Origin: Bugula neritina
Lineage: Eukaryota; Animalia; Bryozoa
Reading direction: 5' to 3'
DNA: 64,000 nt
Assembly (NCBI GenBank): GCA_964035545.1
Contig: OZ037769.1
Coordinates: 14,538,633 to 14,602,632 of the forward strand
Positions 29,138 to 58,490 of this stretch are shown here, piece by piece. Position numbers and translations under genes: made by a program. Numbering within the stretch: position 1 is the first letter of the stretch; the number at the start of each line of letters is the position of its first letter. The notes beneath the pieces were generated by a model. That model was not told the origin of the DNA. It saw only the letters and a list, made by a program, of their open reading frames with translations, and searched no databases.

Positions 29138-30568
29138 TTATTCTCTGGAGTGTACTTTCATGTGGTTAGATAGATTTTGTTTTGTGGTAAAAGTCTGGCA
29201 ACAAGCTGCACATATGTATGGCTTTTCCCCACTGTGTATTCTCATGTGAACATTTAAAGCTCCTTTGTGGCTAAAATTCCGGCCACATGTCTCACATCTG
29301 TAAGGTTTTTCTCCAGTATGTATTCTTATATGAACAACTAGAGTCCCTTTGTGGCTAAAATTCTGGCCACATGTCTCACATTTGTATGGTTTTTCTCTAG
29401 TATGAGTTCTAATATGAACAGTTAGTTGTCCTTTGCGTAAGAAAGTTTTGCTGCAACTTTCACATTTGTAAGGTTTTTCTTCACCATGAATTCTTATTTG
29501 AACCAATAGACTGCTTCTTTGTGTGAAAGTCTTGTCACATAGTTTGCATTTGTATGGCTTTTCTCCATTGTGTATTCTCATATGAGTGTTTAGGTCTCCT
29601 TTTTGTTTAAAAGTTTTACCACAATTATCACATTAATTTGTAAAGCTTTTCCAAGTTGTGCTGTTTCACGGGGTGAGTTAGTTCATCCCTGTCTTTGAAA
29701 ATGGTGTTACATGTTTCAAATTCATATAATTTATTTTCATGGTCAATATTTTTGTATTTAAACAACTCCTGAGATTGTGAAACCTGTTCGCAATGATTTC
29801 TGAACGTGTCATTCTTTTCTAGTTCTATGCATGTTCTAAAGTGTTCTTCACACTTTGCACACCTTCCAGGCTCTTTATTATCTTTTTCTGTGTCAAGGTC
29901 AAACAACAAATAAATGAAGTCTTCCCCACATTCACTACATCTTCTAAGATTTTTATCGCTGTGCATTGTAGCATAGTTATTTGAAACTGGCGTCTGTGAA
30001 CAACCTTCTTCTTTTGTGTCATCTGCTTCAACTTTAAACTCTAAAAGAGGAGATTCCAGATTCTCACATCTGTCATTATTATCAAATGCTAAGTCTTGCT
30101 CTAGAATTTCAATAATAAACATTTAAAATTCACTCAAACAAAATACATAATTGAGTAGCTGTGGTCTAGGGGTTGAAGTGTTTGCTTTGTAAAAACGAAT
30201 TCATGACTTTGAACCTTGACAAAGGCCATTGGTGATGCTAGAAAAAGCATCTAGTCACAATTGCTCTTGTGTCTCATGTAATTTAAAAAAATTCTTAGCC
30301 TGTTCTAACAAAGAGCCGTTCCATCACACAGGATTCTCACAAGGATAGTGACTATTAACTTTCTTGAGTTTAAAATATAGAAGTTTGGGTATATATAGTA
30401 GTTCAAGCAATGCATGGGGAAAGCAGGAGAAATACATGCAAAAATATTGAATTAAAAACAAACTGTACAATTTACTGAAATAAAATTTCCTAAGAGATTT
30501 TTAAATTGAATCGAATTGTTTTATAAAAGGCAATAGAAAGCAACTCTTTACTCACCAACGATAGACAT
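29138..30568 (-). pseudogene. C2H2 zinc-finger paralogue 3 (6 fingers), frameshifted
   Basis: A 4-bp insertion at about 29633-29636 (TAC AAA TTAA TGT GAT AAT TGT) separates the N-terminal region from the fingers. Finger 2 also has His to Gln (LLVQIRIH). Confidence 0.85.
30153..30375 (+). mobile_element. SINE copy in the ZF3 intron
   Basis: GTAGCTGTGGTCTAGGGGTT...GGCCATTGGTGATGCTAG. Confidence 0.8.
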
Positions 30569-31885
30569 CTTGATATTTTAGTATTTCTACTAAATCCTGA
30601 TAAAATAATAAAATACTCTAAAAGATATCCTGGCCAATAAACAGAAGTACTAAATTAAAAGTGTTTCAGCTTTAGAAAAACTTGGAAATTTCAAAATATA
30701 AGATGTCTTAGCTTAAAAAGCCATGGAAATGGTATAAAAGCAAAATTAAAAATCAAAATACAAAACATAAAGACTTGCTATTTGGTTGCTGAAAGCTTTG
30801 AGGATGAGAAGGTATTGGGGAAGCAGCAATTGATAGACATATTTAGCCATATTAATTATTCCTTGAAATTTATTCTCAATGTTTGTGCAACTGGGTGGAT
30901 ATATATAGGTATATATATATACCTATTTTAACATCACCAAAAACTTATAGATTAAATCTCTCTCTATTATTCAAAGTGACAATAGGAATCCTAATAAACT
31001 GTCTAAAAATCCTAGATACATAGAACGATAATGGCAAACATTTGTATTTTTTCAATCTTGCGTTTCTTCAAATTTAAGAATTTGACTTCTAGTATAACTC
31101 AACGTCATAAAATACTTTTTGTAGGCAGATGTCTATAAAGCTTACCCAGCTGTGAGTTCATAAAACAGTCAACAAGTGGAAAAATATCTTGCATATAATA
31201 ATCTGTATCAGTTATCAAATATAATAATTTCTTTTTATGTTAGAACTATAAATACAAGTTTTAGATAAGCCTTCAACTAAAAATATTAATTTAAAATCAT
31301 ATAGCACATTTAGTATTTATTTATTTTGTTTCAATATGTTATGTGCAAGAATGATATATTTATTACTGTTTTATATAGTTGTGTATATAACTAAAGACTT
31401 GGCCTCATAATTGTGAGAATGACACGAAACACCGTGTGATGATTTTACTGAGTTATCTTCTTGCAATGATCATGTATGTTTTGCTCCTGATAATTCTACC
31501 AGAGTTACTTTAAACAAAAAATCAACTAATACAAAGGACTTCAAATATATTAGTTTCCTTATTACCTTTTCTCCACAGAATTTTAAAACTGCTCATAAGA
31601 ATGTATGCTTTAAATTTTACTCGTATATAATAGTGTTTTGCTTGATATTCTTAAACAATTAATCAGCTTTTACAACATTTCTTCAAAACCTTTCTATTGC
31701 ACCTCCCTCCATGGAGCATTTTACTAGTGCTAATTTATACCTTTATATTAGCCTTTTAAACATATTAGGATAAATCTCTTCTGATAAATCATTCATAAAA
31801 TTTTAAAAATTACCATGCATGAGGCTTTTGTTACTAAAATTTGAGACATTATGTAATGGTATTTCTGCATTATTATGCCACTTAA

Positions 31886-32654
31886 AGGATTGCTCTATCT
31901 TGTCTAATAAATGGCCATTTAGGTCAAACACACATAATATTGTGTTTTTCTAAGCATGCATTGACAAAAAGCATTTGACCAAAGGTAGAAAAAGTTAGTT
32001 GAAGTTGAGGGTGTAGATTGGTAACAGCCAAAACGCCGATTTTGAAATGAGCTGGGAACTGTGACGTAACAGCGCCAGCATTCCTGCTGGTCACGTGACT
32101 ATACAAATGAATAACTATAGAAATATGACTGTGAGATGTGATCTTTCAGCTCGAAATTTGTATATTTATAGAAGTGCAAATGTGAATTATCTTAATCTAT
32201 AGTTTTTTGGCATTTTAAATAACATGTATGTAATAACATTAGGCTATATTTTGCTTGTAACCATTAGAAAAAAGCATTGCAAAAGCATGCATTCTTTAGG
32301 ATGAATGCCTGCGATCGATCTAAACTAGGTCAGATTGTGCAATATTACGGGCGCACCAAAGTTGACCTATATAGCGCACTGTAACTGCTTGAGCGTTATT
32401 GGTTGATATTGTGCTCAGCAACCTTGAATACTAGCGTTATAGTTAGCACGTGCAGCATAGTTACTGGCGTTCACACGTCACGTATTAGGCTATTCTTTTT
32501 CATGGCTGAAAATTTTACCGCCCTCAAAATTGGAATTTTGAAAAGCTGTTTTCTAGGCACATATCCCTTTGCAAAGTCACAATTGTTTGCATACACATTT
32601 AATTATAGTTCATAATTATAATGTGATTGTAATAAACTAAGATTGAGCAATCCT
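31886..32654. mobile_element. 769-bp non-autonomous DNA transposon with TTAA target-site duplication (Kolobok-like AG..CT termini)
   Basis: TTAA|AGGATTGCTCTATCTT ... AAGATTGAGCAATCCT|TTAA. The paralogous empty site GCCACTTAATTGTACAACC is at about 57425-57443. Confidence 0.9.
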
Positions 32655-33229
32655 TTAATTGTACAACCTGAATACATAACATCTTTACACAAACCCATAT
32701 AAATTGTGTATTATAGATATTAAAGTATATGAACATAATTTATTATATATAATAATGATCAAAAATTATACAATTACTAATAATAAAACTTACAATACTA
32801 TAAATGAATAACTGAAAACTCTTTGTTTCCGAGTTAATGATACATTTATAAAAACAGTTTTCCATGCACTGACCAAAGCAATAATTAGACCATTACCATT
32901 GACCACGAACGCATTAAAACAATAATCTAAATGTTGATGTGATTTTACGGTTAAATAAGGGCTAAAAGTTATTCCAAATACATTAAACTACTCGGTTTTT
33001 CTCACTATTTGGTCAGTAAAACAGATGTAGTTATGCTAAATTTTCTTGATTATATTTCATGGTTTAATGGTGTTTCTTCTCCCCCTTTCCTATGTAATTT
33101 TGTATATGATTATAGTTGAATTAGAATTGTGTCCTAAAGTTTTCACAAGTTTACATTTGCATTTTCCATGCTATACTTTCGGATAACAGTATGTCTGCTT
33201 TCTCTGAAAGTCTGGCCACATATTTCACA

Positions 33230-34906
33230 TTATTCTCTAGAGTGTAACTTCATGTGGTTAGTTAGATTTTGGTTTGTGATAAAAGTTTTGCTACAAGTTG
33301 CACATCTGTATGGCTTTTCTCCAGTATGAGTTCTCATATGAACAATTAGATGTCCTTTGTGGCTAAAATTCTTCCCACATGTTTCACATCTGTAAGGTTT
33401 TTCTCCACTGTGTATCCTTATATGAACCAATAGATTGCTACTTTGTATGAAAGTTTTGTCACATATTTTGCATTTGTGAGGTTTTTCTCTAGTGTGAGTT
33501 TTTATGTGAAGAGTTAGGTGAGCTTTTCGTTTAAAAGTATTGCTACAAAATTCACATCTGTAAGGCTTTTCTCCAGTGTGTATCCTCATATGAACAGTTA
33601 AAACTCCTTTTCGTTTAAAATTCTTCCCACATGTCTCACATCTGTAAGGTTTTTCTCCACTGTGCATCTTCATATGAATAAATAAACTACTTCTCCGTGT
33701 ATATGCTTTCTCACACTTTTCACATTTGTGTGACTTTTCTCTAGTATGAGTTCTCATATGGACAGTTAGATCTCCTTTTCGTATAAAACTTTTACCACAA
33801 CTTTCACACTTGTATGGTCTTTCCCCAGTGTGTATTCTTATATGAACAGCTAGAGCTCCTTTGTGGGTAAAAGTTTGCCCGCATGTTTCACACCTGCACA
33901 GGTTATCTCCACTATGTATTCTCATATGAATAGATAAATTACTTTTTCGTGTATATGCTTTGTCACACTTTCCACATTTGTATGGCTTTTCCAAGGTGTG
34001 TTTTATCACAGGGTGAGTTAGTTCATTCCTGTTTTTAAAAAAGGTGTTCGATGTTTCAAATTCATAAAAGTTTTCTTTATGGTTTATGTTCATATATTTA
34101 GGTAACTGTTGAGATTCTAAAACCTGTTTGCAATGATTTCTGTATGAGTCATTCTTTTCTAGCTCCATGCATATTCTTAAGTGTTCTTCACACTGCGCAC
34201 ACCTTTTGGGCTCCTTACTATCTCCTTGTGTGTCAAGGCCAAACAACGAATAAAAGAAGTTGTCCCCACATTCACTGCATCTTTTAAGAGTTTTATTGCC
34301 GTGCATTGTAGCATAATTATTTGAAACTGGCATCTGTAAACAACCTTCTTCTTTTGTGTCATCTGCTTCAGCTTTAAACTCTAAAAGAAGAAATTCCAGA
34401 TTCTCACCTCTGTCATTATTCTCAAATGCTAAGTCTTGCTCTAGATCTTCAATGTTAAACATTCAAAATTTACTTAGATAAAATATATAAGAGAGCAGCT
34501 GTGGTCTAGGGGTTAAGTTGTAGTGTTTGCTTTGTAAAAACGAATCTATGGCTTTGAACCCTGACAAAGGCCATTGGTGATGTTAGAAAGAGCATCTAGT
34601 CATAATTGCTATTGTGGGTCTTATTTAAAATATTTCTTAGCCCATTCTAACAAAGAGCTTTTTCATTATGTAGGATTCTCACAAGGATAGCCACTATTAA
34701 ATTTCTTGAGTTTAAAATGTAGAAGTTGAGCTATATATAGTAGTTCAAGCAATGCATGAGGAGATAAAAACAAATACATGAAAAATTGGTAAGTAAAATA
34801 CAAACTGTGAAAGTTACTAAAACAACATACCTAAATAGATTTGTCCTTATAACTTGTTTTATAAACGATAATGGAATGCAATTCTTTACTCACCACTGAT
34901 AGACAT
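33230..34906 (-). CDS. C2H2 zinc-finger protein, paralogue 4 (9 fingers). Exons 34906-34894 and 34440-33230
   Basis: Nine intact fingers, open frame, conserved short ATG exon. Confidence 0.93.
34492..34715 (+). mobile_element. SINE copy in the ZF4 intron
   Basis: GAGCAGCTGTGGTCTAGGGGTT...GGCCATTGGTGATGTTAG. Confidence 0.8.
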
Positions 34907-37388: not shown

Positions 37389-40300
37389 ATGGGTCAACGT
37401 AAATCTGTCCCTCAACCTCCACCTCAACCTCCAGGTCAGTCAGTCTGTGATAAGTTGGTAAATTATATGATTACAAATACTACAACTAGTGACTACAGAA
37501 ATTTTTATGTTCTGAAAATAAGGTGCAGTAGCGGAGAAATTGAGATAGCCTAAGTTCTTTAAATTTTCTAACAAATTTTGAGTTGAGGTGCAGTTTGAAG
37601 TTCTCATGAAAGCATAACTTCTTTTGCTACATTTCTGATCTAGAAACACAGGCTTTTTTCACTTTTTTCATTACAGTACACCTACCTCTGTTTTGACCAC
37701 AGCTGAGTATTACATTGCTTGTGTTTATTATATAATTTTATATACTGAGTATAATGTATATAACTATTATACTGTACCTTATATTATGTTATTCTATAAC
37801 TATAATTAGATTCACCCAAAACATACTCTATTATATAGTATATTTTATTAAGTTACATTATAGTGCACTATAACCAATTATAATATTTTATAATATAATA
37901 TAACACATGCTGTACAGATCCATACTTAATTACTTCAATACTGTTTATAGTGTTGAAGCATATATTATTCTGTTATTTTATATCAACGTTATTATTCATA
38001 TAGTGGTGCAAATTTTGTAGAAATTTACAAGGTGTGGTTCAACACATCCAGTATAGATAGAGCTGATGATGAGTGGATGGGGAATAGGACTACATCCTAC
38101 ACTATAGAAGAGATCAAGAATAAAAGTAGACATCATACAGTGACTCATGTTAAACTGAGGAATGACATTCCTCCAAATATGAACACACTGTTCCCTCATC
38201 TCACACATCTGAGGGTACATGGAGCAGACAATGTTGACTGGACCAGGTATACTAGTGTTATATTAGAAAACTATATTCAATAAGTGACATATTGTCTTGT
38301 AGTAGAATGTGGAGTAATCTCCTCTCACAATAACACTATAGCTTTGGTAACAACTGTTGTATTATTTACCTTGTTTATTGTATTTCTATTTATTATTCAA
38401 TTTAATGTGAGTGAATCTCATTCAAACTAATATGTGATGATTATATTATACAGTTGAATACTTCGATATACCTGTGCGTTATGTTACAGCATATCTTCAC
38501 TGAAGAATCTTGAAGTATTGAATATATCATATAATGGCCCATCTGAAGGTCTACCTGACAATATATTCACATCCTTACTATCATTGAGAAAGTTGTACAT
38601 GAGTAGCTGTAGACTACCAACTATACCAAACAGGTGTGTATTATATGATAGTGTAGAATGGTCAGCTGAGAGTATTCCTGCTATCAGTAAACATGTAGGC
38701 TGATACAAACTATCAGGTCAAAATGTCGGCTACTAAACTCATAATCCATCTGAATAGCCTACCAGATAGAGAGATGATCTGATCAGCCTGGCAGAACAAA
38801 AACAGGATCTGTCTCAAAGGCCTGCAGTTGGTCAGTTCAGAAAGCAGTCTGTGACACCCTCAAGAGCGGAAACTGATAAACTGGTTTCATTAGGCAGGAA
38901 CACCCTGACCTGATTGATTATATAATTTAGTGTATAGTTAAAGGGACTTGTGTAGTGCATGTGTGCTTCACAAAGTGTTTAATATGTTGCATGAAGTAAT
39001 TATATTATTACTAAAATCTTATAAAACATTTCATATGGTATGTTACAGCATCTCTTCACTGAAGAATCTTGAGGTATTGAATATGTCATTGAATAAGCTA
39101 TCTGAAGGTCTACCTGACAATATATTCACATCCTTACTATCATTGAGAAAGTTGAACATGGAGAACTGTGATTTTTCAACTCTACCAAACAGGTGTGTAT
39201 TATATTATAATGTAGAATGGTACTGTAATAAGTATAAGTTATAAATATATTATAGATATGATTAGGTAGAAGTGTATGGTATTTCTTGATATACAACATT
39301 TCACACCTATGTGTTATGTTACAGCATATCTTCACTGAAGAATCTTGAGGTATTGAATATATCGGAGAATAACCTATCTGAAGGTCTACCTGACAATATA
39401 TTCACATCCTTACTATCATTGAGAGAGTTGAAAATGAGGAACTGTAAACTACCAACTCTACCAAAGAGGTGTGTATTATATTATACATTATGAAGTTGTC
39501 TGCACTATCTTTAGTGAGTCAACTAGACCCTGTGTATTCTACATGTCATAGGACAACTACTTTATTCTATCAGATATACTCAGATAGAAATGGTACAACA
39601 ACTTCTCACTTATTATTCTGATAAAATTATTGAAAATTAAATGGTTTGGCTATGAAATGAAATATATATTTAGACTTATCTGAGAGTTGTATATTGTAAC
39701 TCATAAAATTTTTAAGGAAGTTAATGACAGTTAAAACAACTAACAAAATATAATGATTTTCAGCTGTAATAGCTTATTCAGACGGTCAACCAATTGGACG
39801 AATAGCGGACCAAAATGGCACGACGATTGCGAATTTTGTTCGTTTTGGATCACGTGATTCGACCAATGCCTGTATTGCGCCAAACTAACGTCCTTTGATT
39901 AGTCTGACAGTAGAAGAATTTGTTTGTTTGGATCACGTGATTGACTTTTCAAAATTTCATTGGAACCTGACCCAGCTAGGGTCCAGCTGATGAATTTTAT
40001 TTGATTGCACTCCATTGGCTTATTTCAAAAAGCAAAATGTGTGGACATAATTTGCATGGCAAACAAGTTGCTCATTGCTTGTAACTAAATTAAATAAGCA
40101 ATATTTAATAATATTATTAATAATAAATAAAAATTAACTAAAATAAACAAATTTATAAGAAGAATATTTATTTTGCTTTAGTGAGCAGTGTTGTAGTTTT
40201 GTGCACTACTATAGTTTGTGGGGTTTCAGTGTGTATTATCGATTTAGCACATTAGCTCTAAGTTAATCAATAACTCTTGGTAGTAGCCGAGTAATAAAAC

Positions 40301-43300
40301 ACTTTGTTATCCAAGTTTAGTACAAAAGACAAACATTACAATTACTAACAATTTACAGCAGTATACATTCACAATACGTGCATTCAACTCGAGTCCTCGC
40401 TCACAACAACTCTAGACGCGGGAACTCTCACTTATTATTAGCCTGACCCCAGACTCTTCTTATTGGATAGTCCCATGTGACCCGTCACCTGCACGGGTAT
40501 GTTGTTCCAATATTCCCAGAACAGAGGAGAGACAAAATTTATCATTATTATATTATGTAAACCACCACATCGCTCCCTCCAGCAGAAAGTCCTCTTTCTG
40601 ATAATACATGTAATAATATAATGATATAAAAGAAACATTATAGCATAGAACGCCACATATATAAAACTCTATTTTAAGAAATAACCTTACATTGATAAGA
40701 AAAATAACACACATCAGGTCAGTTATAAAGAGAGGAGTAGCGTCACAGATAAAATAATACACAGCGAAGAATAGTGTAGACGATATTACAACGTTGCCCA
40801 CCGAGATCTGAAGCCGAGGAGGCAAGGTGATTAACTATGGATTCTGAGAGCAGTGTCTAGCCTGTCGGGCCCTCAGCCGCCTCTTGATTCGCCCCACAGA
40901 ATCTTTCAACTGATATAGTCCAGTGGTTGTGTTAAGTAAGTCTGGTGCTAACTGTGTAAAGTCAGCCTGGAGGCGCAGGAGTTGCTCTTTGATGGTCGCT
41001 AACCTGGTAGGCTGCTCTGGCGGTGGTGTGACTGGTCGGGGCGGGGACACTGCCACTTCTTCAGTTACTTCCGTACCACGGGTAGTCCCCGTTCCATTTC
41101 CAGTTCCTCCTCCACAACTGGTCTCGTGACCGGGAGGTGGCCACTCGAGTATTGCCTGAAAGAGTTCAACAGTGTTAGTGATGATACATTGAAGTACCGC
41201 CGGCATGAAACAGCCTGACAAGTGCTCTGTTCAGTTAAACACTCGTGAGATTTAGAGTAATGAATAGTTGGTCGAGAACACACACTGCAATGGCAAATTA
41301 CTAGAATCTCTAAGTCACTATACACATGTGTTTTCACCACTATGCTTCATCAGCAAGTATCTCCAGCTCTTTTAACTAAGGAGTTAGAGCCGATTGTTGC
41401 AGTCTAGTTTCCGTACCAGAGAATATAACTAACTCACCCTTCGATTCAGAATAGTAAGACATTTTGAATGCTAGGAATGATAATAATTATTTATTACTGG
41501 TACGTCTACTCTTAACTCCATCAGCATAAGAAAAGACTGGGTAACGTGTTTGCGAAGCGTGACTAGGGCACTGTGCCTCCGGCGGATAAATCTTATTTGT
41601 GATTCCGCCCGGGCGAAAGTTGATTTTTTTGTGATGCTCACAACTCCCACACTTTGTTGCCAGTCTCTCCGTATGGCACCCGATGGACTTTCATATTTGC
41701 CGCTTTCAACGCAGTCACATACGAAGTCTTTTAAATATGCTGGGGGGTGCCTAGTTCGCTGTCCTCATTCCAGGAGAAGCGGTGTACTCACAGGTGGACT
41801 ATTTAGTTCCACGGGTGGTTTTACCGGCCTGTCAGTGACTGGTATTCCTTCGTTTTGTTCTTCCCTGATTTCTCCAAATGGAGCCCCGCCCCCGGGGGCT
41901 TTTGCACTTCCGGACTCACTTCGGGTTCTGGAAGCGATGGCGTCAGATCTGGTGCTGGAGACGGCGAATGCACTTCCACTAATGGAAGTGGTCGTTCATC
42001 TCTTGCCAAGTCTTCTGCCCGCGGCACGACCACTTCATACTCTGGTCCATGCCGCTGTTGCCCACGCGTTGTTGTCTGCCTCCAGGGCTCCAACAATGGC
42101 GAGGCTTCTCCTACTGCATCCGGGCTAGCCCAATACGGTTTCAAGCGAGCCTCATTCTGGATGGACACAATTTAGCGCTAATTTTGAAATTTAGGGATTA
42201 AACTGAAAATCAAATAGCTGGCTTGGTAGCTATTCATTTAATCAAATTTAATGGCTATAAGTATCCAAAGATTACTAAGCTGCACCATCAACATTAATTT
42301 CAAAAACTTTTAGACTATTCGGGTGGAAACTGGAAGTTGAAAGTAAGCGCTATTGTTTATATACGCGAAAGACAATATATGGTCCATTGATCTGTGGATA
42401 GTGTCGCTTTCAGGGACATATATGGTCCATTGATCGCGTACGGGTTAATACTAGGATTCAGCTGTTTCCTCTGGGTGTTGGGGGCATGGGTCCGACCAGG
42501 TCAACAGCTACCACTTGCCACGGCCTTCCAACATATAACCTCCGTCGTCCCGCTTCACCAGGGAGACGACCATGCTTGCTGGCCTGGCAGACTTCACACT
42601 GTTTTACTCTGAGCCGTACATCACGCCCCATACTGGGCCAGTACCACCGGAGCTGTAATTTGGCGAGCACCCTTTGGACTCCTGCGTCAGCCTGTTTGTG
42701 GATGTCCCATATCACCTCTCGGCGTATGGCTGTCGGGCAGACCCCCCTCTTCCTTTCTGGGTGTCTGTCTGTCGCTGCTAAAGTCATGATCAGCAGACCA
42801 TCTTGCCCGATCCTCAGCGAGTCCCAACGTTGACGGTATAGCCGTAACTCAGTGCACCCCTGTCTTAGCTGGGTCGCCGCCCTTCCTTTTTGGCCCGATG
42901 TACGTCGGCTACCACCCTAGGTAGGCTTTCCTGAAGTCTCTTCAGCTCTCTTACGTTACCGGCCAAAACAGGGTTGGCGCGGAGGTTTTTTTACTACCTC
43001 CGGAGGCGCATCAGCCTTCTGTTTGAGTTGACCCTGGTCCCAGTCATACTCAACTCCCGGATGGACCAGTGCCGCCAACGCGGACAGGGGAGGACCTCCA
43101 TCTCTCTTCTCAATGTTGAAGCACTGTTTACATCCCCCGTCTGGTCGCCGGCTCAGTCCGTCTGCATTGCCGTGTTTGTTACCGGGTCGGTGTTCGATCC
43201 GGTAAGAGAACTCGGCTAGAATCTCGAGCCACATGGCGACCTGGCTAGACGGTTCTGCTCTCGTGCACAACCAAATCAAAGAGGCGTGGTCCAAACCTCT

Positions 43301-45089
43301 CTCGCCCCGGGTTGAGGAGCTTGTGGTTGGCAACGGTTGCGGCCCGGTCGCGGAGGGGGAAACGGCTTGCCTCTCGGCGTCTGCGCCGGTTCCCTTTCAG
43401 GCTCTCAGATCGGAAACCTGTCGAATCTGTTGTGGAGTGGCATAGAGAAGGCATTCGGCGGGTGGCGTTGGTAGCCTACTCGCCGTGGATGTTGCCATTC
43501 CGATGTGTCAGTACGCGGCACCCGGCGGGGTGATTGGCGTCTTCTCTTCCCTCTAGGTTTCATCATCGGCCCGCAATAGGCGGGAACATCTGCGGGCCGC
43601 GGTAGTTTAACCCTTGGAGAACAAGAGGGCAGTATCTCTGGAAATGTCCAGGTCTTCCGCATTCCCAGCAGAGGTTTTGTCCAGTGCCTGGTAATTGCAC
43701 CGGCAGCCCTAAAGGCTCACAGGCGGTATCTACCTGGTCTTGAGGGATTAATATGGTGACTAGCTTGGCTAACATGTCGGTCAGCTGCGCGACCTTCGAT
43801 GCGGCCGTCTGTTGTCTCACATTAACAGACGCGGGGGGGGGGTCTCGCCATTAGATCGGCCAGAGCAGCGGAGGGCTCCAGGTCTACTTGGCGAAAGGCC
43901 CCGCGGTTTTTATGCATATGATTTGCTAGGAGGTATGCTTCTCCTTCGGTGAGAGTGCCCTCGACCGTGGTGATTCCCCTCGCCAGAAACTGGTGATGGA
44001 GTCCCAAGTCGTTGATGGACCGCACAAAGACATCGTAAGTGTACCTTTCACGGTTCGCTTGAGGCAGGTCACTGTATGCGATATGCGCCAGCTTCATCAC
44101 CGTGGCAGCATGCTCTTGTAGGGGCATGTGAGGATTACGCCGTAACCTGAGCGTCAATGACGGAGATGCCAAAACGGGCCCGCAGAAAAGCAAAAATACT
44201 GTTAATGTCAGGTCCCAACCTGTAGGGTTTGGCCTTGTCCATTAACAACATTCTAAGCTTAAGCAGGGCCACCCTAGGTGGCCACTGTGTGACTTCCATC
44301 ACATCATTAAATTCTTGGATGAACTGTTCTACTTCTTCTTCACCTGTGAAAGTAGGTGCCTTCAGCCGGTATCTATCTTCATTCAGCTCCCTAGGAGCTC
44401 TCACTTCTTCTATTGCTGTCGGATGTACAGGAATAACATTATCTTCATGCTCACCTTCACTATGTTTGTTAGTTGGGCATTCGTCGGACCCAACGAATGA
44501 AGATTCTTAGTGTCTGAATAAGCTATAATTATGAAAATCTCACCGATTGTTATACTGAGATATATTATAATATTATACTGGGATATAATATAATGCTATA
44601 CTGAAATATATTATAATGTTATATTGAGATATATTTCTATAGTGTCATACTGAGATATATTATAATGGTATACTGAGATATAATATAATATTATACTGAG
44701 ATATATTATAATACTATACTGAGATATATTATAATGTTATACCGACATATATTATAATGTTATACTGAGATAATATATTATAATGTTATACTGAGATATG
44801 TTATACTGAGATATATTATGATATTATATTGAGATATATTATAATGTTATACTGAGATATGTTATACTGAGATATATTATAATACTATACTGAGATATAT
44901 TATAATGTTATACTGAGATATAATATAATGTTATACTGAGATATATTATAATGTTATACTGAGATATAGTATAATGGTAGTCAATCCAATGTTACTGCAT
45001 TATATCATTTACCTGCTCTTTTGTATCAAATAACTGGGAGTATAACTCCTAACCTATCTATAAATTTTATACAATACATTGCACAATCT

Positions 45090-45120
<31 letters not shown>

Positions 45121-48100
45121 TATGAATTGTGTTATGGAACTTCAATATTCATTTTTTGCAAACCCCATTTTTAAAGCCTCAAATATATATATGTTTCATA
45201 TTTATTAGCATACAGAGTCTACAGAAGTTAGAGGAACTGGAGATATCATGGAATAAGTTCACCAGTATACCATATCCTGTGTACTCACTGAGTAGTTTGC
45301 GGGTACTAGATATATTTTCCAATAGATCCCTGACATCCTTAGACCCTGAGATACTACAGCTAACGCAACTTCATAAACTGGATGTTGGATCTTGTAAGGG
45401 TCTCACCTCTCCTCCACTAGAAGTATGTGAGAGAGGCGTAAATGCTGTGAGACAATACTACACAGACTTGGCTAAAGGTGCTGGTAGGAGTCTACCATTT
45501 GCTATTGTAGCTATGCTAGGTAATACAATGGCCGGAAAGACCAGTTTAACCAAAACATTACAGAATGCTGACAGAAAGAGAGTTTTGACCAACAGAGAGC
45601 CAGATGCTGTGAAAGATGAGACAACAAAGGTGTTTAATGTTGAAGAAGTGGAGGTGGATGGTACAGTACTCCGTGTCATTGATATGGGAGGCCAGGAGGT
45701 CTACCATATCACCTATCAACTGACACTGAGACAGAACTGCATTCCAGTCATAGTAGTCAACATGGAACAGTATGATAAGACTTCAAGTGAATCAACAGAC
45801 AGAGAAGCTGTTAGAAGATTAGCCTTTGATTACATGTCTCACCTCTACATGGCTAACCCAACTCTTGGTCCACCAAAACTTATCTTCACCCATAAAGATA
45901 AGTTTCAAGATACAGCATTTCAGAAGCTTCGAAAAAGCTTTCTTGAAACATCAAATAAACTGTGTGAGGAGATGATTAGAGAAGAGAAAGAATTGGGTGG
46001 AGAATTTGCTCAAATAGAACATTTCAGTGAATCAGCCGGAGGAGTCTTTCTTGGTGAGGACATTTATGAGGTCGGAAAGGATGATAAGTATGAAGTGTTT
46101 GACCTGATCAAGGAATCTCTTCTTCATAGCAGTCAACATTTTGTGAAACCTTTACCTCTTGTCTGGGAGGAAGTGAATGAAAATGTGCTGTCTATTCCTT
46201 CTGTGTACAGCACCTTTGATGAGATACTGAAATACGTACAAACAGAACTTCAACACATTGAGTCAGGTCAGCTTGACATAATCCTCACATACATGCATGA
46301 CTGCGGCAAAGTCTTGTGGTATAAAGATATCAGCTGTCTCAGGCCGTACATATTCCACAATATTTCAGAAGTCACCAAACTCCTCTGTGTCTTGTATCAT
46401 CATGATCCTAAGATCTGGCAGAGTAGAGTTGATCAGTTCCAGCCATACTATTCGCAGACTGAACGACGTGTTGAGAAACAGGAACTTGAGAAATCTGTCA
46501 ATGATCTCACTGACACTGGTTTGATGATGCAGTCACTTCTTGTTTATTTCATTGAAAAAGAGACATCATTCAAAAGTTCTAAAGATGTTGAAGTTGCCGT
46601 CTGCTTACTCCAGACGTTTCGTTTGCTGTACAGTCCAATACATGGCAAATCTGAAGAGCCATGGTTCATTGTACCTCAGTATGCTAAAAACTACTGCAGC
46701 ACTTCTCCTTCCCCACCCAATGGCATTTTGCTTCAAGTGGAGACACACTTCAATGGTCTAGCCCTGCCACAATATGTCTACCACCAGATGACGATCGGTT
46801 TGTTGGAATCGTTCCCAGATGAGTTTGCTGTGATGAAAGTGAAGAGAAACGGAGCTGATGTCTTTCAAGATAAAATCCACACGAAGCTGGTACATGATTG
46901 CAAATCTAGAAAAGTGTCACTCTACGTGTCATCTAATGCTGCCAACATTAGCAGAATGTGGGAGAGACTCATCACCACCAACAACAACATCCTTAGACAT
47001 GTTTTAGAAAATTGGACAGCAAGTAGACCAGTCACTACATGCTACTGTGCTCACTGCCTTCTGCTAGGACTTCCTTGTCCTAAGAAAGTGCTCAATCCTC
47101 CATGGTGTCTTCACTCCTTGAAACATTCTCCATCAAAGCCCAGATTGTGTACTGGATCCTTAACAACTCTGTGTGGTGATGAGAAGATAAGGGGTGCTCT
47201 TCTCTATCCATGTATGTTTGGTTACATTATGGTGCAGTTCCTGTATTAAGTTTTATTTCATTGCAGTTTACCACATTTAGATATGAATTGAGGTAATTCT
47301 CCCCATTCCTTGGCATAATTGGGGTTAGAAAAAGAATTATTTATATATTCTATTTCCAAGTATTTCAAAATTTCAGGTCAAACATTGTCTGAGAGAGAAG
47401 CTGATGAGTTGGAGAAGTTTGTGAATGAGCTGAATCGTCGAGGAGCTCAAGAAAGATTAGCTAATTCTGGTAAATACGGAGTTACCAGTTTGTGCAAGCG
47501 TCTGTTTTTTGAATGTTGATCAAGTTCAACTTGAACTGGTTAAGCACTAAATGATTTTACTGCAGTTTATTTCATACCATGTCACCATTTTTTTGCAAGA
47601 ATTTGGGTTCTTTAAAAGTTTTGCTTTATTTGGTAAAGTAATGAACGTATATTATTGCACCACAGCTGAGTACTAGTTTGCCGATCATTGTGATATTATA
47701 TTTCTTATTTATTCCGTGATGTGATATGAATTTGTACTTTATAGTTGCCAACAGCAGCCAATCAGATTTCCCGACCTCCACAATAACAGCCAATGACGCT
47801 CTCAGTGATCTCTCTGATGATGATGAGAATCTGTACCCTGATGAAGAGGAAGTTGAAAATATGAAGTTTATAAGACTCAGACTGATTCCCACCAGCAACC
47901 CGAATATAATACAGCTGTTCTCAAACACTGACAAGGTGATCACTTCTAATGTCTATGTCATTTATTCTTGCCAGTTGTTTAGTTCGGCAGTTACAAGTAT
48001 TTCTCTGTTACATCCAGGTGTTTAAAACAACCCCAAAAAGAGGAAGAGCTCTGATAATAAACAACATGAACTTTGATAAGAGACCCGACTTGTGTAGGAA

Positions 48101-50990
48101 AGGTTCAGATGTGGATGTAGAGAATCTTTCCACCATGTTGAAAACTCTCAAGTTTGATGTTGTGACACACGCAGACCTGAAGGCTGAGGTATGTTTTGCT
48201 GCTGTTTACTTATCAAGGTAAAAACTTACTCCTCTGTTTGTTTACAAACACTACATATGTATACAGAATACGGTGTAACGGTTTACAGGTGTAAGGCCAG
48301 GTTTACAGGTGTAAGGCTGGGTTTACAGGTGTAAGGCTGGGTTTACAGGTGCAAGGCCGGGTTTACAGATATAAGGGTTTACAGGTGTAAGGGTTTACAG
48401 ATGTAAGGCTGGGTTTACAGGTTTATGGGTTTACAGGTGTAAGGGTTTACAGGTGTAAGGCTGGGTTTACAGGTGTAAGGCCGGGTTTAATGTTGAGGCC
48501 TCTGGACACTGAAGCAGGGTTAATCCAGCACCACTTATTGACCATTTTTAATAAATAATGGTTAACAAATTAAGTGTTTAAAGTAAACAAGTCAAATGAG
48601 TCATTATTATTGTTATTAATAATTTTGACTTAAGAATAGGAATGGGTTTATATTCTATAACTGAATTGGCTTATTAATAGTTTTACCGGGGCTGATTAAT
48701 GCCGAAGTCCTTACTTTAACATAAATTGTTAAATTAAAATTAAAGTAAATGAGCTTTATAAGCTATTTCTTCACCTCATATGATTTTAGTTTAGCTAAAT
48801 GTTCAAAGATCTAGTACAAATTTTCATAAGTTTTAAAGAATCTTTGAAATTTAGATAAGACTTCCGCCATCCCATTTTCAATATTTTACTTCTTGTTGTA
48901 GGAAATGCTGTCTGCTGTAACATTTGAGGTAAAAAAAGAGGAATACAAAGATCTGGGATGTCATGTGTTAGTTATCATGACTCATGGAGGGTTGAACAAC
49001 TACATCTATGGTACAGACTTAAAACGAGTCAAACTAACAGATGTGTATGACCTTCTAACTCCTTTGAACTTCCCAGGAATGGCTGGCAAACCAAAGGTTG
49101 TTATACTGGAAGTCTGTAGTGGAGGTAATCAGTTTAAAAAATTATTTGTGGTCACTGTAGAGTTGTGTTCTCTTGAATGCTAGTATTTGCTGGAGTATGT
49201 TAACTTACAACCCATTTCACAATTATGTAGATTAATTCTTACATATTTGACACTGTTTATGTTCATCATATGAAAATTAAATATAATTTTTTTATATCTC
49301 TCACAGAGAGGAGTGATTATGGCCAAAGAGGTATAGACAGATTTGATATCGGAGAATCACAAAAGGAGGGGGAGAGTATCTCACTTCCACTTGCTAAAGT
49401 TCCAGGAGATAAAAATGCGGAGGCTATGAATAGACTGAACTATGATGACCTGCTAGTAGTGAAATCTAGCATGGAGTGTAAGTAAGACACATGTAATGGA
49501 GTACAAGTTACTGTATCCATGATATTATACTGTATAACTAGTCAACTAGTTGTATTTCCAATAGTTGAATAATTTATATGATCGATTCTACTTGTAGCAT
49601 TCATATCAAAAAGCCACCCTGAGTATGGATCTCTAATGGTTAGAGCTCTTGTATCTTCCATATATAAACATGCCTGTCACCATGACCTCTTCACCATATT
49701 CAAACAGGTGAATGTATTGCACTTTGTTACACTTATAAGCATGGAGAACTGATGAAATTGAAAATGGCACAAATTAATGTTAGCTGTTGGCAAACTTTAT
49801 TAATTTTAGGAGTAGATATTTATAATTATTTTACAGTTTGTTATAGACTATAGAGTATTCACAGTTTACTTTTGTTATAGTGTAGGTATTGTTACAGTGA
49901 AGGTATTGTTATAGTGAATGTATTGTTATAGGGTAGACATTGTTATAGTGTAGGTATTGTTATAGTGTAGGTATTGTTATAGTGAAGGTATTGTTATAGT
50001 GTAGGTATTGTTATAGTGTAGGTATTGTTATAGTGAAGGTATTGTTATAGTGTAGGTATTGTTATAGTGAAGGTATTGTTATAGTGAAGGTGTTGTTATA
50101 GTGTAGGTATTGTTACAGTGTAGGTATTGTTACAGTGTAGGTATTGTTATAGTGTAGGTATTGTTATAGTGTAGGTATTGTTATAGTGTAGGTATTGTTA
50201 TAGTGTAGGTATTGTTATAGTGTAGGTATTGTTATAGTGAAGGTATTGTTATAGTGTAGGTATTGTTATAGTGTAGGTATTGTTATAGTGAAGGTATTGT
50301 TATAGTGAAGGTATTGTTATAGTGTAGGTATTGTTATAGTGTAGGTATTGTTATAGTGAAGGTATTGTTAGAGTGTAGGTATTTTTATAGTGAAGGTATT
50401 TTTATAGTGAAGGTGTTGTTATAGTGTAGGTATTGTTACAGTGTAGGTATTGTTATAGTGTAGGTATTGTTATAGTGTAGGTATTGTTATAGTGTAGGTA
50501 TTGTTATAGTGAAGGTATTGTTATAGTGTAGGTATTGTTATAGTGTAGGTATTGTTATAGTGAAGGTATTGTTATAGTGTAGGTATTGTTATAGTGAAGG
50601 TATTGTTATAGTGAAGGTAATGTTATAGTAAAGGTATTGTTATAGTGAAGGTATTGTTATAGTGAAGGTATTGTAATAGTGAAGGTATTGTTATAGTGTA
50701 GGTGTTGTTATAGTGAAGGTATGGTCATAGTTAAGGTATTGTTATAGTGAAGGTATTGTTATAGTGAAGGTATTGGTTATTTAGAATAATCTGGTATAGA
50801 GTAGTAATAAGATTTCAATGTTTACTTGCTTAACATTCTTCAGGTGCAGACGAAAGTGAGAAAACTGTGTTTAGACAAAAATCTAGAGAGTGGAGGACAG
50901 TTGGTTGTAGTTTGGGATACTCTCACTCATATGAGAAAACTTTACCTCTTTCCTGGTTTTAATGGCCTCAAAAGAGAAGATGACTCTTAG
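37389..50990 (+). CDS. LRR-Roc-COR (ROCO)-caspase fusion protein, about 1270 aa. Exons: 37389-37434, 38021-38246, 38490-38633, 39049-39192, 39325-39468, 45209-47211, 47377-47469, 47745-47935, 48018-48188, 48902-49124, 49307-49477, 49598-49707, 50844-50990
   Basis: All junctions are GT-AG and phase-compatible; total 3813 nt with one terminal TAG. LRRs (LEVLNISxNxL); Roc motifs G1 GNTMAGKTS, G3 DMGGQEVY, G4 THKD; COR (PLPLVW...LTYMHDCGKVLWY); caspase p20 (RGRALIINN, RKGSDVD, VIMTHG, GKPKVVILEVCSG) and p10 (DDLLVV, GSLMVRAL, TLTHMRKLYLFPG). Confidence 0.9.
38490..39468 (+). repeat. Three tandem 144-nt phase-2/phase-2 exons, each encoding two 24-aa LRRs
   Basis: 38490-38633, 39049-39192 and 39325-39468 share the flanks ATGTTACAG| and |GTGTGTATTAT and have an identical central core. 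Confidence 0.95.
40217..40569 (-). repeat. Probable 3' LTR (about 353 bp) with adjacent polypurine tract
   Basis: On the minus strand GGAGGGAGCGA is followed directly by TGTGGTGGTTT. The other end reads TGTGGGGTTT on the plus strand, giving TG..CA inverted termini. No second LTR is available to confirm the boundaries. Confidence 0.65.
40217..44540 (-). mobile_element. Defective Ty3/Gypsy-type LTR retrotransposon, antisense in the ROCO-caspase intron
   Basis: GC-rich island. Gag fragments (KAPTFTGEEEVEQFIQEF), CCHC knuckle CWECGRPGHFQRYC, RNase H end (DHASLIWL...YRIEHRPGNKHGNADGLSRRP) and integrase N-terminus (WYWPSM...CEVCQ...PWQVVAVDLVGP). Many frameshifts; no recognisable protease or RT. 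Confidence 0.9.
44548..44978. repeat. 23-bp minisatellite (GTTATACTGAGATATATTATAAT)n, roughly 19 units
   Basis: Direct tandem repetition with length variants. Confidence 0.95.
48279..48488. repeat. 20/15-bp minisatellite (GGTTTACAGGTGTAAGGCTG)n in a caspase-domain intron
   Basis: About 11 tandem units. Confidence 0.95.
49873..50775. repeat. 17-bp minisatellite (TATTGTTATAGTG[T/A]AGG)n, about 53 units, in the last intron
   Basis: Highly homogeneous tandem array with two main variants. Confidence 0.97.
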
Positions 50991-54017: not shown

Positions 54018-55815
54018 TTATTCTCTAGAGTGTACTTTCATGTGAAAAGTTAGATGGTGTTTTCTGGTATAAGTCTTGCTACAAGTTTCACATCTGTATG
54101 GCCTTTCTCCAGTGTGAGTTCTCATATGAACAATTACAGTTTCTTTGTAGCTAAAATTCTGGCCACATGTGTCACATCTGTATGGCTTTTCTCCAGTATG
54201 AGTTCTCATATGAACAATTAGTTCTCCTTTTCGTCTAAAAGTTTTACCACAAACTTCACATCTATATGGCTTCTCTTCACTGTGTGTCCTCATATGAAGA
54301 GATAGAGTACTACTTTGTTGAAAAGTTTTATCGCATACTTTGCACCTGTAAGGTCTTTCCCCAGTGTGGATTCTCATATGAATATTTAGAGTTCCTTTGT
54401 GGGTAAAAGTCTGACCACATGTTTCACATCTGTAAGGCTTTTCTCCACTGTGAATTCTCATATGAACAATTAAATGTGCTTTTTGTCTATAAGTCTTGCC
54501 ACAACTTTCACATCTGTAAGGCTTTTCTCTACTGTGAATTCTTAAATGACTCAATAGATTGTTTTTTTGTGAGAAATTCCTATCACATATTTTGCACTTG
54601 TAAGGCTTTTCCCCAGTGTGTATTCTCATATGAACAATTAGAGCTCCTTTGTGGGTAAAAGTCTGGCCACATGTTTCACATTTGTATGGTTTTTCTCCAC
54701 TGTGATTTCTCATATGACTCAATAGATTGCTTCTTTGTGTGAAAGTCTTGTCACATAATTTGCATTTGTATGGTTTTTCTCCACTGTGTATCCTCATGTG
54801 AATAGATAAACTACTTCTCTGTGTATATGCTTTGTCACACTTTTTACATTTGTATGGCTTTTCTAAGTTGTGCTTTTTAATGGGGCTATAAGTTAGTTCA
54901 TCCCTGCTTTTGAAAATGGTGTTACATGTTTCAAATTCGTAAAAGTTTTCTTAATGGTTGATGTTCATATATTCAGGTAGTTCCTGAGATTGTGAAACCT
55001 GTTCGCAATGATTTCTGTATGAGTCATTCTTTTCTAGCTCCATGCATGTTCTAAAGTGTTCTTCACACTTCGCACACCTTTTGGGCTCTCTACTATCTTC
55101 TTCTGTGTCAAGGCCAAACAATGAATAAACGAAGTCTTTCCCATACTTCCTACATCTTTTAAGATGTTGATTGCTGTGCATTGTAAGATAGTTATTTAAA
55201 ACTGAAGTCTGTGAACAACCTTCTTCTTTTGTGTCATCTGCTTCAACTTTAAACTCTAAAAGAGGAGATTCCAGATTCTCACCTTTCTCTCTGTTCTCAG
55301 ATGCTAAGTCTTGCTCTGGAATAATAACATCAAAAATATACAGTTTATTTAGATAAAATACAAAAAGGAGCAGCTGTGGTTTAGGGGTTTGCCTAGTAAA
55401 CACAAAGTCAAGGGTTTGAACCCAGACAAACGCCATTGGTGATGTTAGGAAGAGCACCAAGTCATGATTGCTCCCGTGAATCATTTAAATGGGCCCTTAA
55501 TAGCATGCTTTAACAAAAACAGTTTCTATAAAGGGTTTCTTCCAAGAACATGCGATTCTCACGGGGATAGCGACTATGAACTTGTGTGAGTTTGAAATAT
55601 AAAATATGAATATAAAATATAAAAATTGCTGTATATATACAGTAGTTCAAGCAATGCATGGGGAGTTAAAGACAAATACAGGCAAAAATTATTAACTAGA
55701 AGCAACCTGTAAATAACTTTACTAAAACGAAATCTCTTGGTAGATTTTTAAATTGAATCAGAATGTTTTATAAAAGACAACAGAAGACAACTCTTTACTC
55801 ACCACTGATAGACAT
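54018..55815 (-). pseudogene. C2H2 zinc-finger paralogue 5 (10 fingers) with an in-frame premature stop
   Basis: TAA at 54953-54951 where ZF1, ZF2 and ZF3 have GAA and ZF4 has AAA; the frame continues into 10 intact fingers. The N-terminal CxxC is changed to CRKY. Confidence 0.85.
55367..55597 (+). mobile_element. SINE copy in the ZF5 intron
   Basis: GGAGCAGCTGTGG...GCCATTGGTGATGTTAGGAAGAGCA. Confidence 0.8.
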
Positions 55816-58000
55816 CTTTATATTTTAGTATTTCTACTCAATGCTGATAAAATAATAAAATACTCTAAAACATATCATGTCCAATAAACAAAAGTACTAA
55901 ATTAAAAGTGATAAAGCATTAGAAAAACTTGGAAATTTCCACTCAATCCAGATAAAATAATTTAGAAGATATTATGGCCAATAAACAGAATTACTAAGTT
56001 AAAATCGTTTTTAGCTTTAGAAAAACTCTGAAATTTTAAAATATAGAAAATTGTAGCTTAAAAAGCCATGGAATTGGTACAAGCAAAATTAAAAATTAAA
56101 ATACACAACATAAAAACCAGCTATTTGGTTGCTGAAAGCTTTGAGGATGAGAAAGTATTGGAAAAGCAGCAACTGATAGACATATCTTATAAATTATTGC
56201 TTGAAAATTTGGTGAAGGTAAAGCCTCTCAGTCAAAGTCTTGTAAATTATTCTTTGAAATTTATTGCTTATAATGCTTGTGCAACTGGGTGGATATATAT
56301 AAGTATATATATACACCTATTTCAACATCACCAAAAAAATATAGAAGAAATCTCTCTATATTATTAATAAACCCTTTGAAAATCCTAGATACATAAAACA
56401 ATAATGGCAAACATTTATATTTTTTCAACCTGAGTTCCTTTAAATTTAAGAATGACTTATAACATAACTCAACGTCATAAAATGCTTTTTGTAGACATGC
56501 AGATGTCTATAAAGCTTACCCAGCTGTGAGTTCACCTCAAACATCAACTAAATTCTAAGAATACTTTTGTTAATAGATAACTTATGGTGCCTATTTAATA
56601 TATCTAATAGTTTATTACAATCTATTAATAGAATAAGTAAATATCAAATTTTAAAACAATCATGATACTAAATATCAACTGGCTGTAAAATTTGTCGACG
56701 TGAATTTCATAAAACAGCCAACAAGTGGAACACTATCTTGTATATATAATTATATATATCAGTTACCAAATATAAATATTTTTGTGTGGTAAGACTATAA
56801 ATACAAGTGTTAGATAAGTTTTCAACTAAAAATATTAATTTAAAATCATATTGACCATTTAGTATTTATTTATTTTATTTCAATATATGTTATGTGTGAG
56901 AGTAACAGTTTAGTTACTGTTTTATATATAGTTCCATACTAAAGACCTGACCTCATGATTGTGAGAATGACATGAAATTCATGTGATGATTTTAGTGAGT
57001 TATCTTCTCGTTGTGACAATATATGCTTTGCTCCAGATATTTTTATCAGGGTTAACTTAAATAAAAATCAACTAATACAAAGGACTTCAAATATATTAGT
57101 TTCCTTATTACCTTTTCTCCACAGAATTTTAAAACTGTTCATAAGCATTTATGCTTTAAATTTTACTCGTATAATAGTGTTTTGCTTGATATTCTTAAAC
57201 AATTAATCAGCTTTTACAACATTTCTTCAAAACCTTTTTATTGCACCTCCCTCCATATAGCATTTTACTAGTGCTAATTTATACCTTTATATATTAGCCT
57301 TTTAAACATATATTAGGATAAATCTCTTCTGATAAATCATTCCTAAAATTTTAAAAATTACCATGCATGAGGCTTTTGTTACTAAAATTTGAGACATTAT
57401 GTAATGGTATTTCTGCATTATTATGCCACTTAATTGTACAACCTGAATACATAACATCTTTACACAAACCCATATAAATTTTGTATTAGATATTAAAGTA
57501 TATGAACATAATTTATTATATATAAGAATGATCAAAATTATACAATTACTAATAATAAAACTTACAATACTGAATGAATAACTGAAAACTTTTTGTTTCC
57601 TCGTTAATGATACATTTATAAAAACAGTTTTCTATGCACTGACCAAAGCAATAATTAGACTTAACATTACCATTGACCACAAACATATTAAAACAATAAT
57701 CTAAATGTTGATGTGATTTTATGGTTAAAGGGCTAAAAGTTATTCTAAATACATTAAACTAATCGGTTTGTCTCACTAGAATTGGTTGGTAATATAAAAC
57801 AGATGTAAATTTGCCAAATTTTCTTGATCATATTTCATGGTTCAATGGTATTTTTCTAGTATGTAATTTTATGTATGAATATAGTTGAACACGGATTGAG
57901 TCCTATAAAGTGTTCACAAATTTACATTTGCAGTTTTCATGCTATACTTTCATATAAAAATATGTCTGGTTTCTCTGAAAGTCTGGCTTCATATTACATA

Positions 58001-58490
58001 TTATTCTCTAGAGTGTACTTTCATGTGCTTAGTTATATTTTGTTTTCTGGTAAAAGTCTTGGTACAAGTTGCACATCTGTATGGCTTTTCTCCAGTATGA
58101 GTTCTCATATGAACAATTAGATCTCCTTGTCGTATAAAAGTTTTACCACAACTTTCACATTTGTATGGTCTTTGCCCAGTGTGTATTCTTATATGAACAA
58201 CTAGAGCGCATTTGTGGCTAAAATTCTGGCCACATGTCTCACATCTGTATGGCCTTTCTCCAGTATGAGTTCTCATGTGGACAATTAGTTGTCCTTTTCG
58301 TCTAAAACTCTTGCTGCAAATTTCACATTCGTAAGGTTTTTCTTCACTGTGACTTCTTATATGACTCAACAAATGGCTACTTTGTGTGAAAGTCTTGTCA
58401 CATAATTTGCATTTGTATGGCCTTTCTCCACTGTGTATTCTCATATGAGTGTTTAAATCTCCTTTTTGTATAAAAGTTTTACCACAAACT
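58001..58490 (-). pseudogene. C2H2 zinc-finger paralogue 6; five intact fingers plus one cut at 58490
   Basis: Homology stops inside the first finger (...VCGKTFIQKGDLNTH). No N-terminal region or ATG exon appears in the remaining 5.5 kb. Confidence 0.85.

Follow-up and report, generated by a model that had tools for sequence, protein, structure and literature searches.

Can one animal gene carry a leucine-rich repeat (LRR) sensor, a GTPase switch and a caspase effector on a single chain? This question is raised by a locus in a 64,000-nucleotide (nt) stretch of the genome of the bryozoan Bugula neritina (hereafter the window; contig OZ037769.1, C5:14538633-14602632 of a 216-Mb assembly), which is AT-rich (GC about 0.30), intron-rich animal DNA. 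A preliminary description, made from the letters alone, had proposed that 13 exons there splice into one frame of about 1270 amino acids (aa), joining LRRs, a Roc GTPase, COR, an acidic linker and a caspase. We re-derived all 13 exons from the sequence and found the same gene on the plus strand at 37389-50990 (positions are those of the window unless stated otherwise). The summed coding length is 3813 nt, or 1270 codons and a TAG stop, in a single open frame; every intron begins with GT and ends with AG, splice phases are compatible, and no in-frame stop occurs across the 13 exons. We show here that the locus is a real, intact 13-exon animal gene encoding a cytosolic single-chain protein of about 1270 aa. 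In this protein an N-terminal MGxxxS is followed by about ten LRRs, Roc, COR-A/COR-B, an acidic linker of about 95 aa and a caspase, distributed over the exons as follows:

37389-37434, plus strand: exon 1, with the start codon, MGQRKS (an N-myristoylation-type MGxxxS) and then a Pro/Gln-rich stretch
38021-38246, plus strand: exon 2, N-terminal region and first LRR-like repeat
38490-38633, plus strand: first LRR cassette exon (144 nt, phase 2-2), two LRRs
39049-39192, plus strand: second LRR cassette exon (144 nt, phase 2-2)
39325-39468, plus strand: third LRR cassette exon (144 nt, phase 2-2)
45209-47211, plus strand: exon 6 (2003 nt), last three to four LRRs, Roc, COR-A, COR-B and a Cys/His-rich tail
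47377-47469, plus strand: exon 7, linker
47745-47935, plus strand: exon 8, acidic Ser-rich linker, with DLSDLSDDDENLYPDEEE at about 47795-47851
48018-48188, plus strand: exon 9, start of the caspase large subunit (Pfam PF00656), with an Arg aligned to R179
48902-49124, plus strand: exon 10, catalytic His (48983-48985, in THGG) and Cys (49115-49117, in EVCSG)
49307-49477, plus strand: exon 11, intersubunit linker and start of the small subunit
49598-49707, plus strand: exon 12, small subunit, with SKS in place of the caspase SWR (R341 position)
50844-50990, plus strand: exon 13, end of the small subunit and TAG stop

Six of the roughly ten LRRs are encoded by the three interchangeable 144-nt cassette exons, and exon 6 shares with these its starting phase and the register 'I-x-S-L-x-K-L-E'. 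A divergent paralogue on C6 aligned to the window at the predicted exons only, which provides independent support for the exon boundaries. The joint between exons 1 and 2 is without RNA support, and an in-frame alternative (donor 37457, acceptor 38032) would give a protein of 1274 aa. The MGQRKS start is conserved in the close paralogues B and C; paralogue A has MGQLIS. In exon 8, the linker motif DLSDLS-DDDE-NLYPD (47795-47851) is retained in paralogues A-D, and its retention in the one that is 63% identical suggests a candidate phosphorylation or docking site.

Next, we examined the joining of these exons in contigs from four runs of three studies, aligned over 45100-49850. Among the read runs that contain this sequence are RNA-Seq libraries with the label 'symbiont metagenome', and the four runs were taken for RNA by guess, on the ground that contig depth covered the exons and left introns empty. 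Depth was found on every exon in 45100-49850 and was about zero in the intron bins 47485-47643, 48280-48756 and 49711-49850. The joint 47211/47377 was present in all four runs (placed at 47213/47380, the first two bases of exon 7 repeating the donor GT), and 47469/47745 in three of the four. The joints 48188/48902, 49124/49307 and 49477/49598 were each seen in all four. By contrast, 47935/48018, 49707/50844 and 39468/45209 were represented only by loose ends, in which the letters agree with the adjoining exon of a close relative. Of the three junctions that the preliminary description had singled out, the first two are therefore recovered in full, and the third (47935/48018) is represented by a matching loose end and no full joint. 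About two thirds of the contigs are 90-99% alike to the window and come from paralogues or other alleles, and hundreds are at least 99% alike. Since the changed base at 47379 in the 47211/47377 contig matches paralogues, the spliced fusion pattern is established at the level of the family, and the evidence that this very copy follows it is weak. One sample had an extra joint, from 47213 to 47788, by which exon 7 and the first part of exon 8 are left out; the AG at 47788-47789, if used, keeps the frame (1 + 146 nt), and the joint could be that of an isoform or of a paralogue.

A genome search placed the gene among many relatives. From 204 first-look candidates, at least 64 matches to the Roc-COR exon were scored, at 61-85% identity; arrays on C1 (33.8-35.1 Mb) and C6 (2.5-6.3 Mb) contain most of them. 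The majority have an open frame, and 21, about one third, are interrupted by one or two stop codons. The exon with the catalytic His and Cys (exon 10) gave 135 genome matches. When the two match lists were paired by hand comparison, exon 10 was found downstream on the same strand within 5 kb in 59 of the 64 and within 8 kb in 61. At least 60 genes of equal layout make up this lineage-specific family, and members of it are expressed as spliced fusion transcripts. Among named homologues, the closest are RefSeq proteins of another bryozoan, Watersipora subatra, where many models carry LRRs and Peptidase_C14, several of them with Roc or COR, under the names 'MFHAS1 homolog' or 'uncharacterized'. 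Two of these, P0032 (1419 aa) and P0046 (1413 aa), are colinear with the window, the alignment starting in the LRR exons and reaching the final caspase exon.

These data bear on the possibility that the fusion is a modelling artefact, and that a ROCO gene ending at the stop at 47249 is followed by an independent caspase gene. That stop lies 38 nt into intron 6 and would be reached if the donor at 47212 were unused, and the Watersipora RefSeq models P0019 and P0030 are without a caspase. The preliminary description had named transcripts ending at 47249 as the sign of separate genes. No contig of the four runs was seen to read through past 47211 to this stop; depth falls sharply after 47211, and the joints on either side of exon 7 are present as described above. 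Furthermore, the caspase exons have no start codon or prodomain ahead of them, the same adjacency and strand recur in 59 of 64 paralogues, and fused RefSeq models exist in two phyla. We rejected the two-gene reading, which is now highly improbable, on the joints in RNA-like contigs, the paralogue adjacency and the fused RefSeq models. Spliced contigs, adjacency in about 59 of 64 paralogues and colinear RefSeq proteins, together with the high-confidence fold of the Roc-COR part, bear out the fusion as first proposed.

We then characterized the domains by Pfam, PDB and fold searches run exon by exon. Pfam placed LRRs in exons 3-6 and Roc (PF08477) in exon 6, at 30.4 bits against a cut-off of 27. 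The protein encoded by exon 6 carries G1 (GNTMAGKTS, 45519-45545), G3 (DMGGQE, 45681-45698) and G4 (THKD, 45888-45899), and in an alignment of this protein with 45 homologues these motifs and the switch-I Thr (T139) are near-invariant in the 46 sequences, consistent with the intact Roc noted at the outset. The Pfam match to COR-A was weak (16.9 bits, under the cut-off of 35.3). A PDB sequence search found the Rocos of C. tepidum and M. barkeri (Roco2), LRRK1 and LRRK2, and reached the LRR-Roc part only, so that COR is shown by fold. An AlphaFold model of the exon-6 protein had a mean predicted local distance difference test (pLDDT) value of 90 and a predicted template modelling score (pTM) of 0.88. 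Foldseek matched it to LRRK1 (8e05, 2.5e-22), C. tepidum Roco (6hlu, 1.3e-21) and LRRK2, and also to a Roc-COR tandem (3dpu) and an isolated COR (3dpt), with template modelling (TM) scores of 0.64-0.67 by target. On this predicted structure, the presence of Roc, COR-A and COR-B in exon 6 is established. A homodimer prediction with two copies of the COR-A/COR-B residues 290-667 scored 0.00, which is no answer and counts neither way. At the end of COR-B (47040-47186) lies a cluster of Cys and His, CxCxHC followed by further Cys, in which C613 is invariant and H615, C616 and C655 are near-invariant among the 46 homologues. It looks like a small metal-binding knuckle, and we know of no Cys/His knuckle of this kind described for COR.

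For the caspase, Peptidase_C14 (PF00656) was matched at 39.0 bits in exon 9 and 36.3 bits in exon 10 (cut-off 21.4). The best PDB matches of exon 10 are caspase-8, a Drosophila caspase and CED-3, and its catalytic residues, His in THGG and Cys in EVCSG, align with the His and Cys of caspase-8. Exons 9-13, including those for the small subunit, are covered by fragment alignment to the fusion proteins of Watersipora and amphioxus. The S1 pocket that binds Asp in canonical caspases (Arg179, Gln283, Arg341) was not recovered in full: of its three residues only Arg179 remains, Glu stands in place of Gln283, and Ser, immediately preceded by Lys, in place of Arg341 (SWR to SKS). Thus the 'complete caspase with both catalytic residues' of the preliminary description stands as to profile and His/Cys dyad and falls short at residues 283 and 341. 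The protein would be a caspase-fold enzyme with a His/Cys dyad, but its Asp specificity is doubtful, since with Glu283 and Ser341 cleavage after Asp cannot be assumed. As Watersipora has QAC and Arg at 341, and amphioxus QACRG and SWR, the change of the pocket is derived in the Bugula neritina subfamily.

Among 44 sampled paralogous copies of exon 10, the His is kept in all 44 and the Cys in 37; the others read EASSG (five), EAASG (one) and ETYKG (one). Position 283 in the same sample is mostly Glu, with His in six and Gln in four, and EVCSG is common to at least 10 paralogues. The five EASSG copies lie in the C6 array (for example at 3752480-3752760, 4078980-4079260 and 6130950-6131230 of C6) and keep the His and an open frame; by their sequence they may be protease-dead decoys or regulators. 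Such variation could mean that the module is a paracaspase-like signalling protease that does not cut after Asp, or in some paralogues an inactive decoy, rather than a death executioner. The Glu and Ser found here where Watersipora and amphioxus keep the canonical residues, the mixture of Glu, His and Gln at 283 within the family and the EASSG copies point in this direction. Against it, R179 is kept and the remaining signature is caspase-like, nearest to caspase-8 and CED-3. We consider this reading, a prediction from sequence, doubtful.

Different parts of the protein evolve at different rates. We estimated the ratio of non-synonymous to synonymous changes (dN/dS) by the pairwise Nei-Gojobori method against the three close paralogues A-C, which gives only rough values on such short segments:

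caspase exons, 0.05-0.44 (exon 11, 0.10-0.17)
Roc, 0.23-0.39
COR, 0.31-0.44
LRR part of exon 6, 0.7-1.5
exon 2, 0.9-2.7

The caspase exons are under purifying selection, and the LRR parts evolve about as fast as silent sites or faster. We compared eleven cassette exons, taken from four genes: of 47 positions, 40 were invariant or nearly so, and variation was concentrated at x positions of LxxLxLxxN/C, one in the first LRR strand and three in the second. A receptor-like role fits this variation on the LRR concave face and the dN/dS gradient.

How might such a protein work? We propose that the variable concave face of the LRRs would bind a non-self or danger ligand, and that binding would shift the nucleotide state of Roc and the COR-mediated oligomeric state. 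This shift would juxtapose two caspase domains, and the protease would be activated by induced proximity with no CARD or DED adaptor. Myristoylation at MGxxxS, if present, would place the protein at a membrane. With Glu and Ser for Gln and Arg in S1 the protease may not cut after Asp, so that its output could be either cell death or cleavage of a signalling kind. For the Roco of C. tepidum, the dimer is the form without GTP and the monomer the form with it, so either nucleotide state could be the 'on' state for the caspase. The chain of events from ligand through Roc-COR dimerization to caspase activation, as put forward in the preliminary description, we infer only.

We give a probability of roughly 55% to the reading that best explains the whole, namely that an intact family gene encodes a single chain acting inside the cell as sensor, switch and effector. 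Several points weigh against it. The contigs are short, with one joint each, and several derive from close paralogues; the one across 47211/47377 has one changed base (47379, giving Glu), as in paralogues B and C, and the RNA label of the runs is a guess. The S1 pocket is altered, the dN/dS values are rough pairwise estimates on short segments, and intron 5 holds a 4.7-kb retroelement. The scarcity of NACHT and NB-ARC in the genome, discussed below, comes from an exon-wise six-frame search that can miss split domains. Finally, ligand binding, GTPase activity, dimerization, protease activity and a role in death are all predicted.

Biologically, the protein would most likely act in innate immunity or in the discrimination of self from non-self by the colony. 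Colonial bryozoans recycle their zooids, and neighbouring colonies are fused or rejected. It is therefore possible, if on the whole unlikely, that the family is real but serves developmental cell death during cyclic polypide regression, or colony allorecognition, and not pathogen sensing. Zooid recycling and fusion or rejection would both offer such a role, and variable LRR faces and tandem arrays suit allorecognition as much as immunity; bryozoan allo-incompatibility is mentioned in PMC8195603. A pure developmental switch, on the other hand, needs no 60 or more paralogues with diversifying sensor surfaces, while allorecognition and immunity are not separated by the present data.

Alternatively, this copy could be a decaying or silenced member, standing alone among zinc-finger genes, with a retroelement in intron 5 and a non-canonical active-site motif. 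The retroelement is the following:

39770-44518, minus strand: degraded GC-rich retroelement with a gag zinc knuckle and an integrase H2C2, non-coding for the protein

Its GC content is 0.42-0.54 against about 0.30 around it, and Pfam matched PF17921 and PF00098; no long terminal repeats were found for it. Paralogues A and B lack it at the corresponding position, which marks the insertion as specific to this copy. That insertion speaks for decay, as do the shedding of members by the family (about one third of scored Roc-COR exons with stops, 7 of 44 exon 10 copies without the Cys) and the 47211/47377 contig, which is closer to paralogues than to this copy. However, none of the 13 exons is interrupted and their splice sites are good, dN/dS in the caspase exons is well under 1, hundreds of contigs are at least 99% alike, and EVCSG, found in at least 10 paralogues, is a conserved state and no private lesion. 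Decay of this copy is thus improbable.

C2H2 zinc-finger genes lie on both sides of the gene (19796-34462 and 54018-62897, minus strand, 5-9 fingers per open reading frame), which places this copy outside the large ROCO-caspase arrays of C1 and C6. Three minisatellites occur in the introns: a 17-nt unit repeated over about 900 nt in the last intron (49860-50780), which paralogues A and B share; a repeat in intron 9 (48260-48490) whose unit is about 20 nt long; and a 23-nt period ahead of exon 6 (44527-44799). An Rfam search of the window gave no matches.

We asked where else the architecture occurs. Models with LRR, Roc, COR and Peptidase_C14 were found in Watersipora and Branchiostoma, which by Pfam share the four-part architecture of the Bugula neritina gene. 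In Watersipora, P0032 and P0046 have LRR and Peptidase_C14, with COR-A detected in P0046 and Roc in P0152. In Branchiostoma, complete LRR-Roc-COR-A-COR-B-caspase proteins exist (e.g. P0159 and P0084), and near-identical ROCO scaffolds (78-86% identity in COR-B) carry a glycosyltransferase-4 (GT4), OTU or Death domain instead. A further relative, P0133, has a CARD after COR-B and represents an adaptor version of the ROCO scaffold. Roc-COR identity is 30-34% to Watersipora and 24-31% to amphioxus; these relatives keep QAC and Arg341, in contrast to EVC and Ser in the Bugula neritina copy. A quick, unrooted maximum-likelihood tree of Roc-COR (31 rows, P0160 left out because it gave no BLAST hit), with support given by the Shimodaira-Hasegawa-like approximate likelihood ratio test (SH-aLRT) only, set a bryozoan clade apart from an amphioxus/Lingula clade, at 100 each. 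Amphioxus ROCOs bearing caspase, GT4, OTU or Death were interleaved in this tree, indicating that the effector was swapped within the amphioxus lineage. Judged from these sequences, effectors probably swap within lineages, and the bryozoan and amphioxus fusions are probably separate. Orthology to MFHAS1 is pointed to by RefSeq names alone; the tree sets the bryozoan clade apart from the 'MFHAS1 homologs' of Lingula and amphioxus, and vertebrate MFHAS1 is not among its rows.

As for novelty, the preliminary description knew of no characterized animal protein with this architecture, and that much stands. No paper describing an animal ROCO-caspase was found in a literature search, which gave LRRK2, PMC8195603, PMC9334734 and RIPK surveys only. 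The architecture itself is not new: it is already present in animals as uncharacterized RefSeq models, and its bacterial class is described in PMC8195603.

Were the proposed mechanism true, the protein would be an inflammasome-like device built on a Ras-like GTPase, not on a STAND ATPase, with its caspase on the same chain. It would offer a minimal system for the control of an attached enzyme by Roc-COR, which is the open question in LRRK2 biology. The family would also count as a new receptor class of invertebrates, for immunity or allorecognition, and its altered S1 pockets would make it a natural series of caspase variants. Exon-wise family searches of the genome in six frames, which are crude and may miss split NACHT or NB-ARC domains, gave one weak match to NACHT, none to NB-ARC, 4 to CARD and 11 to Death, in contrast to the at least 64 ROCO-caspase genes and the 135 matches to the caspase exon. 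Classical NLRs and Apaf-1-type ATPases may thus be scarce in this genome or split into small exons. A bolder and quite tentative extension is that ROCO-caspases, and not NLRs, are the main intracellular non-self receptors of Bugula neritina: dozens of GTP-gated single-chain receptors, diversified by LRR cassette duplication and perhaps alternative splicing, with a protease retargeted off Asp and an adaptor-free pathway, as a separately arisen counterpart of bacterial AP-GTPase systems and brown-algal LRR-ROCOs. The near absence of NACHT and NB-ARC signal makes this replacement scenario testable.

Among known systems, the order LRR, Roc, COR-A, COR-B is common to the Bugula neritina protein, animal MFHAS1/MASL1-like ROCOs and LRRK1/LRRK2. 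LRRK1, LRRK2 and the C. tepidum Roco superpose on the predicted fold over about 660-720 columns, at an identity of only 13-16%. Proteins of the MFHAS1/LRRK type end in a kinase, a death domain or nothing where the Bugula neritina protein has a caspase, and they are encoded by a single-copy gene as opposed to a family of at least 60 members. ROCO-TIR and ROCO-Death proteins are known from Aplysia (PMC9334734). The NLR inflammasomes and the apoptosome (NLRP1, NLRC4, Apaf-1 with caspase-1 or -9) likewise combine a repeat sensor, a nucleoside-triphosphate switch and a caspase activated by induced proximity, but this is a functional analogy only. Their switch is a STAND ATPase, whereas the Bugula neritina protein uses a Ras-like GTPase plus COR, carries its caspase on the one chain and has no CARD, PYD or DED adaptor. 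Pfam found no NACHT or NB-ARC core in any exon of the gene, and with Roc as the switch the protein is not an NLR, even if by analogy it would work like one.

In brown algae, LRR-ROCOs are candidate immune receptors assembled from shuffled LRR exons (PMC3341825, PMC11378527). As in Bugula neritina, their LRR cassette exons are symmetric, of the same phase and variable in number, with variation on the ligand-facing strand. They differ in ending after COR without an effector and in belonging to another kingdom, and the Bugula neritina cassette comprises two LRRs (144 nt); caspase is unmentioned in the supplement of PMC11378527. The closest likeness in layout is to the bacterial AP-GTPase conflict systems, whose arrangement of LRR, AP-GTPase, COR and C-terminal effector on one polypeptide was found here as well. 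In bacteria, at least 24 alternative C-terminal domains, caspase among them, have been described computationally for such LRR-AP-GTPase-COR proteins (Kaur et al. 2021, PMC8195603). The sensor-switch-effector logic, domain order, fast-evolving N-terminal LRRs and multiple copies per genome are alike (PMC8195603). The bacterial systems, however, are prokaryotic, intron-less and predicted only. Because the Bugula neritina protein has an animal-type caspase encoded by an intron-rich animal gene, the animal fusion probably arose separately from the bacterial one.

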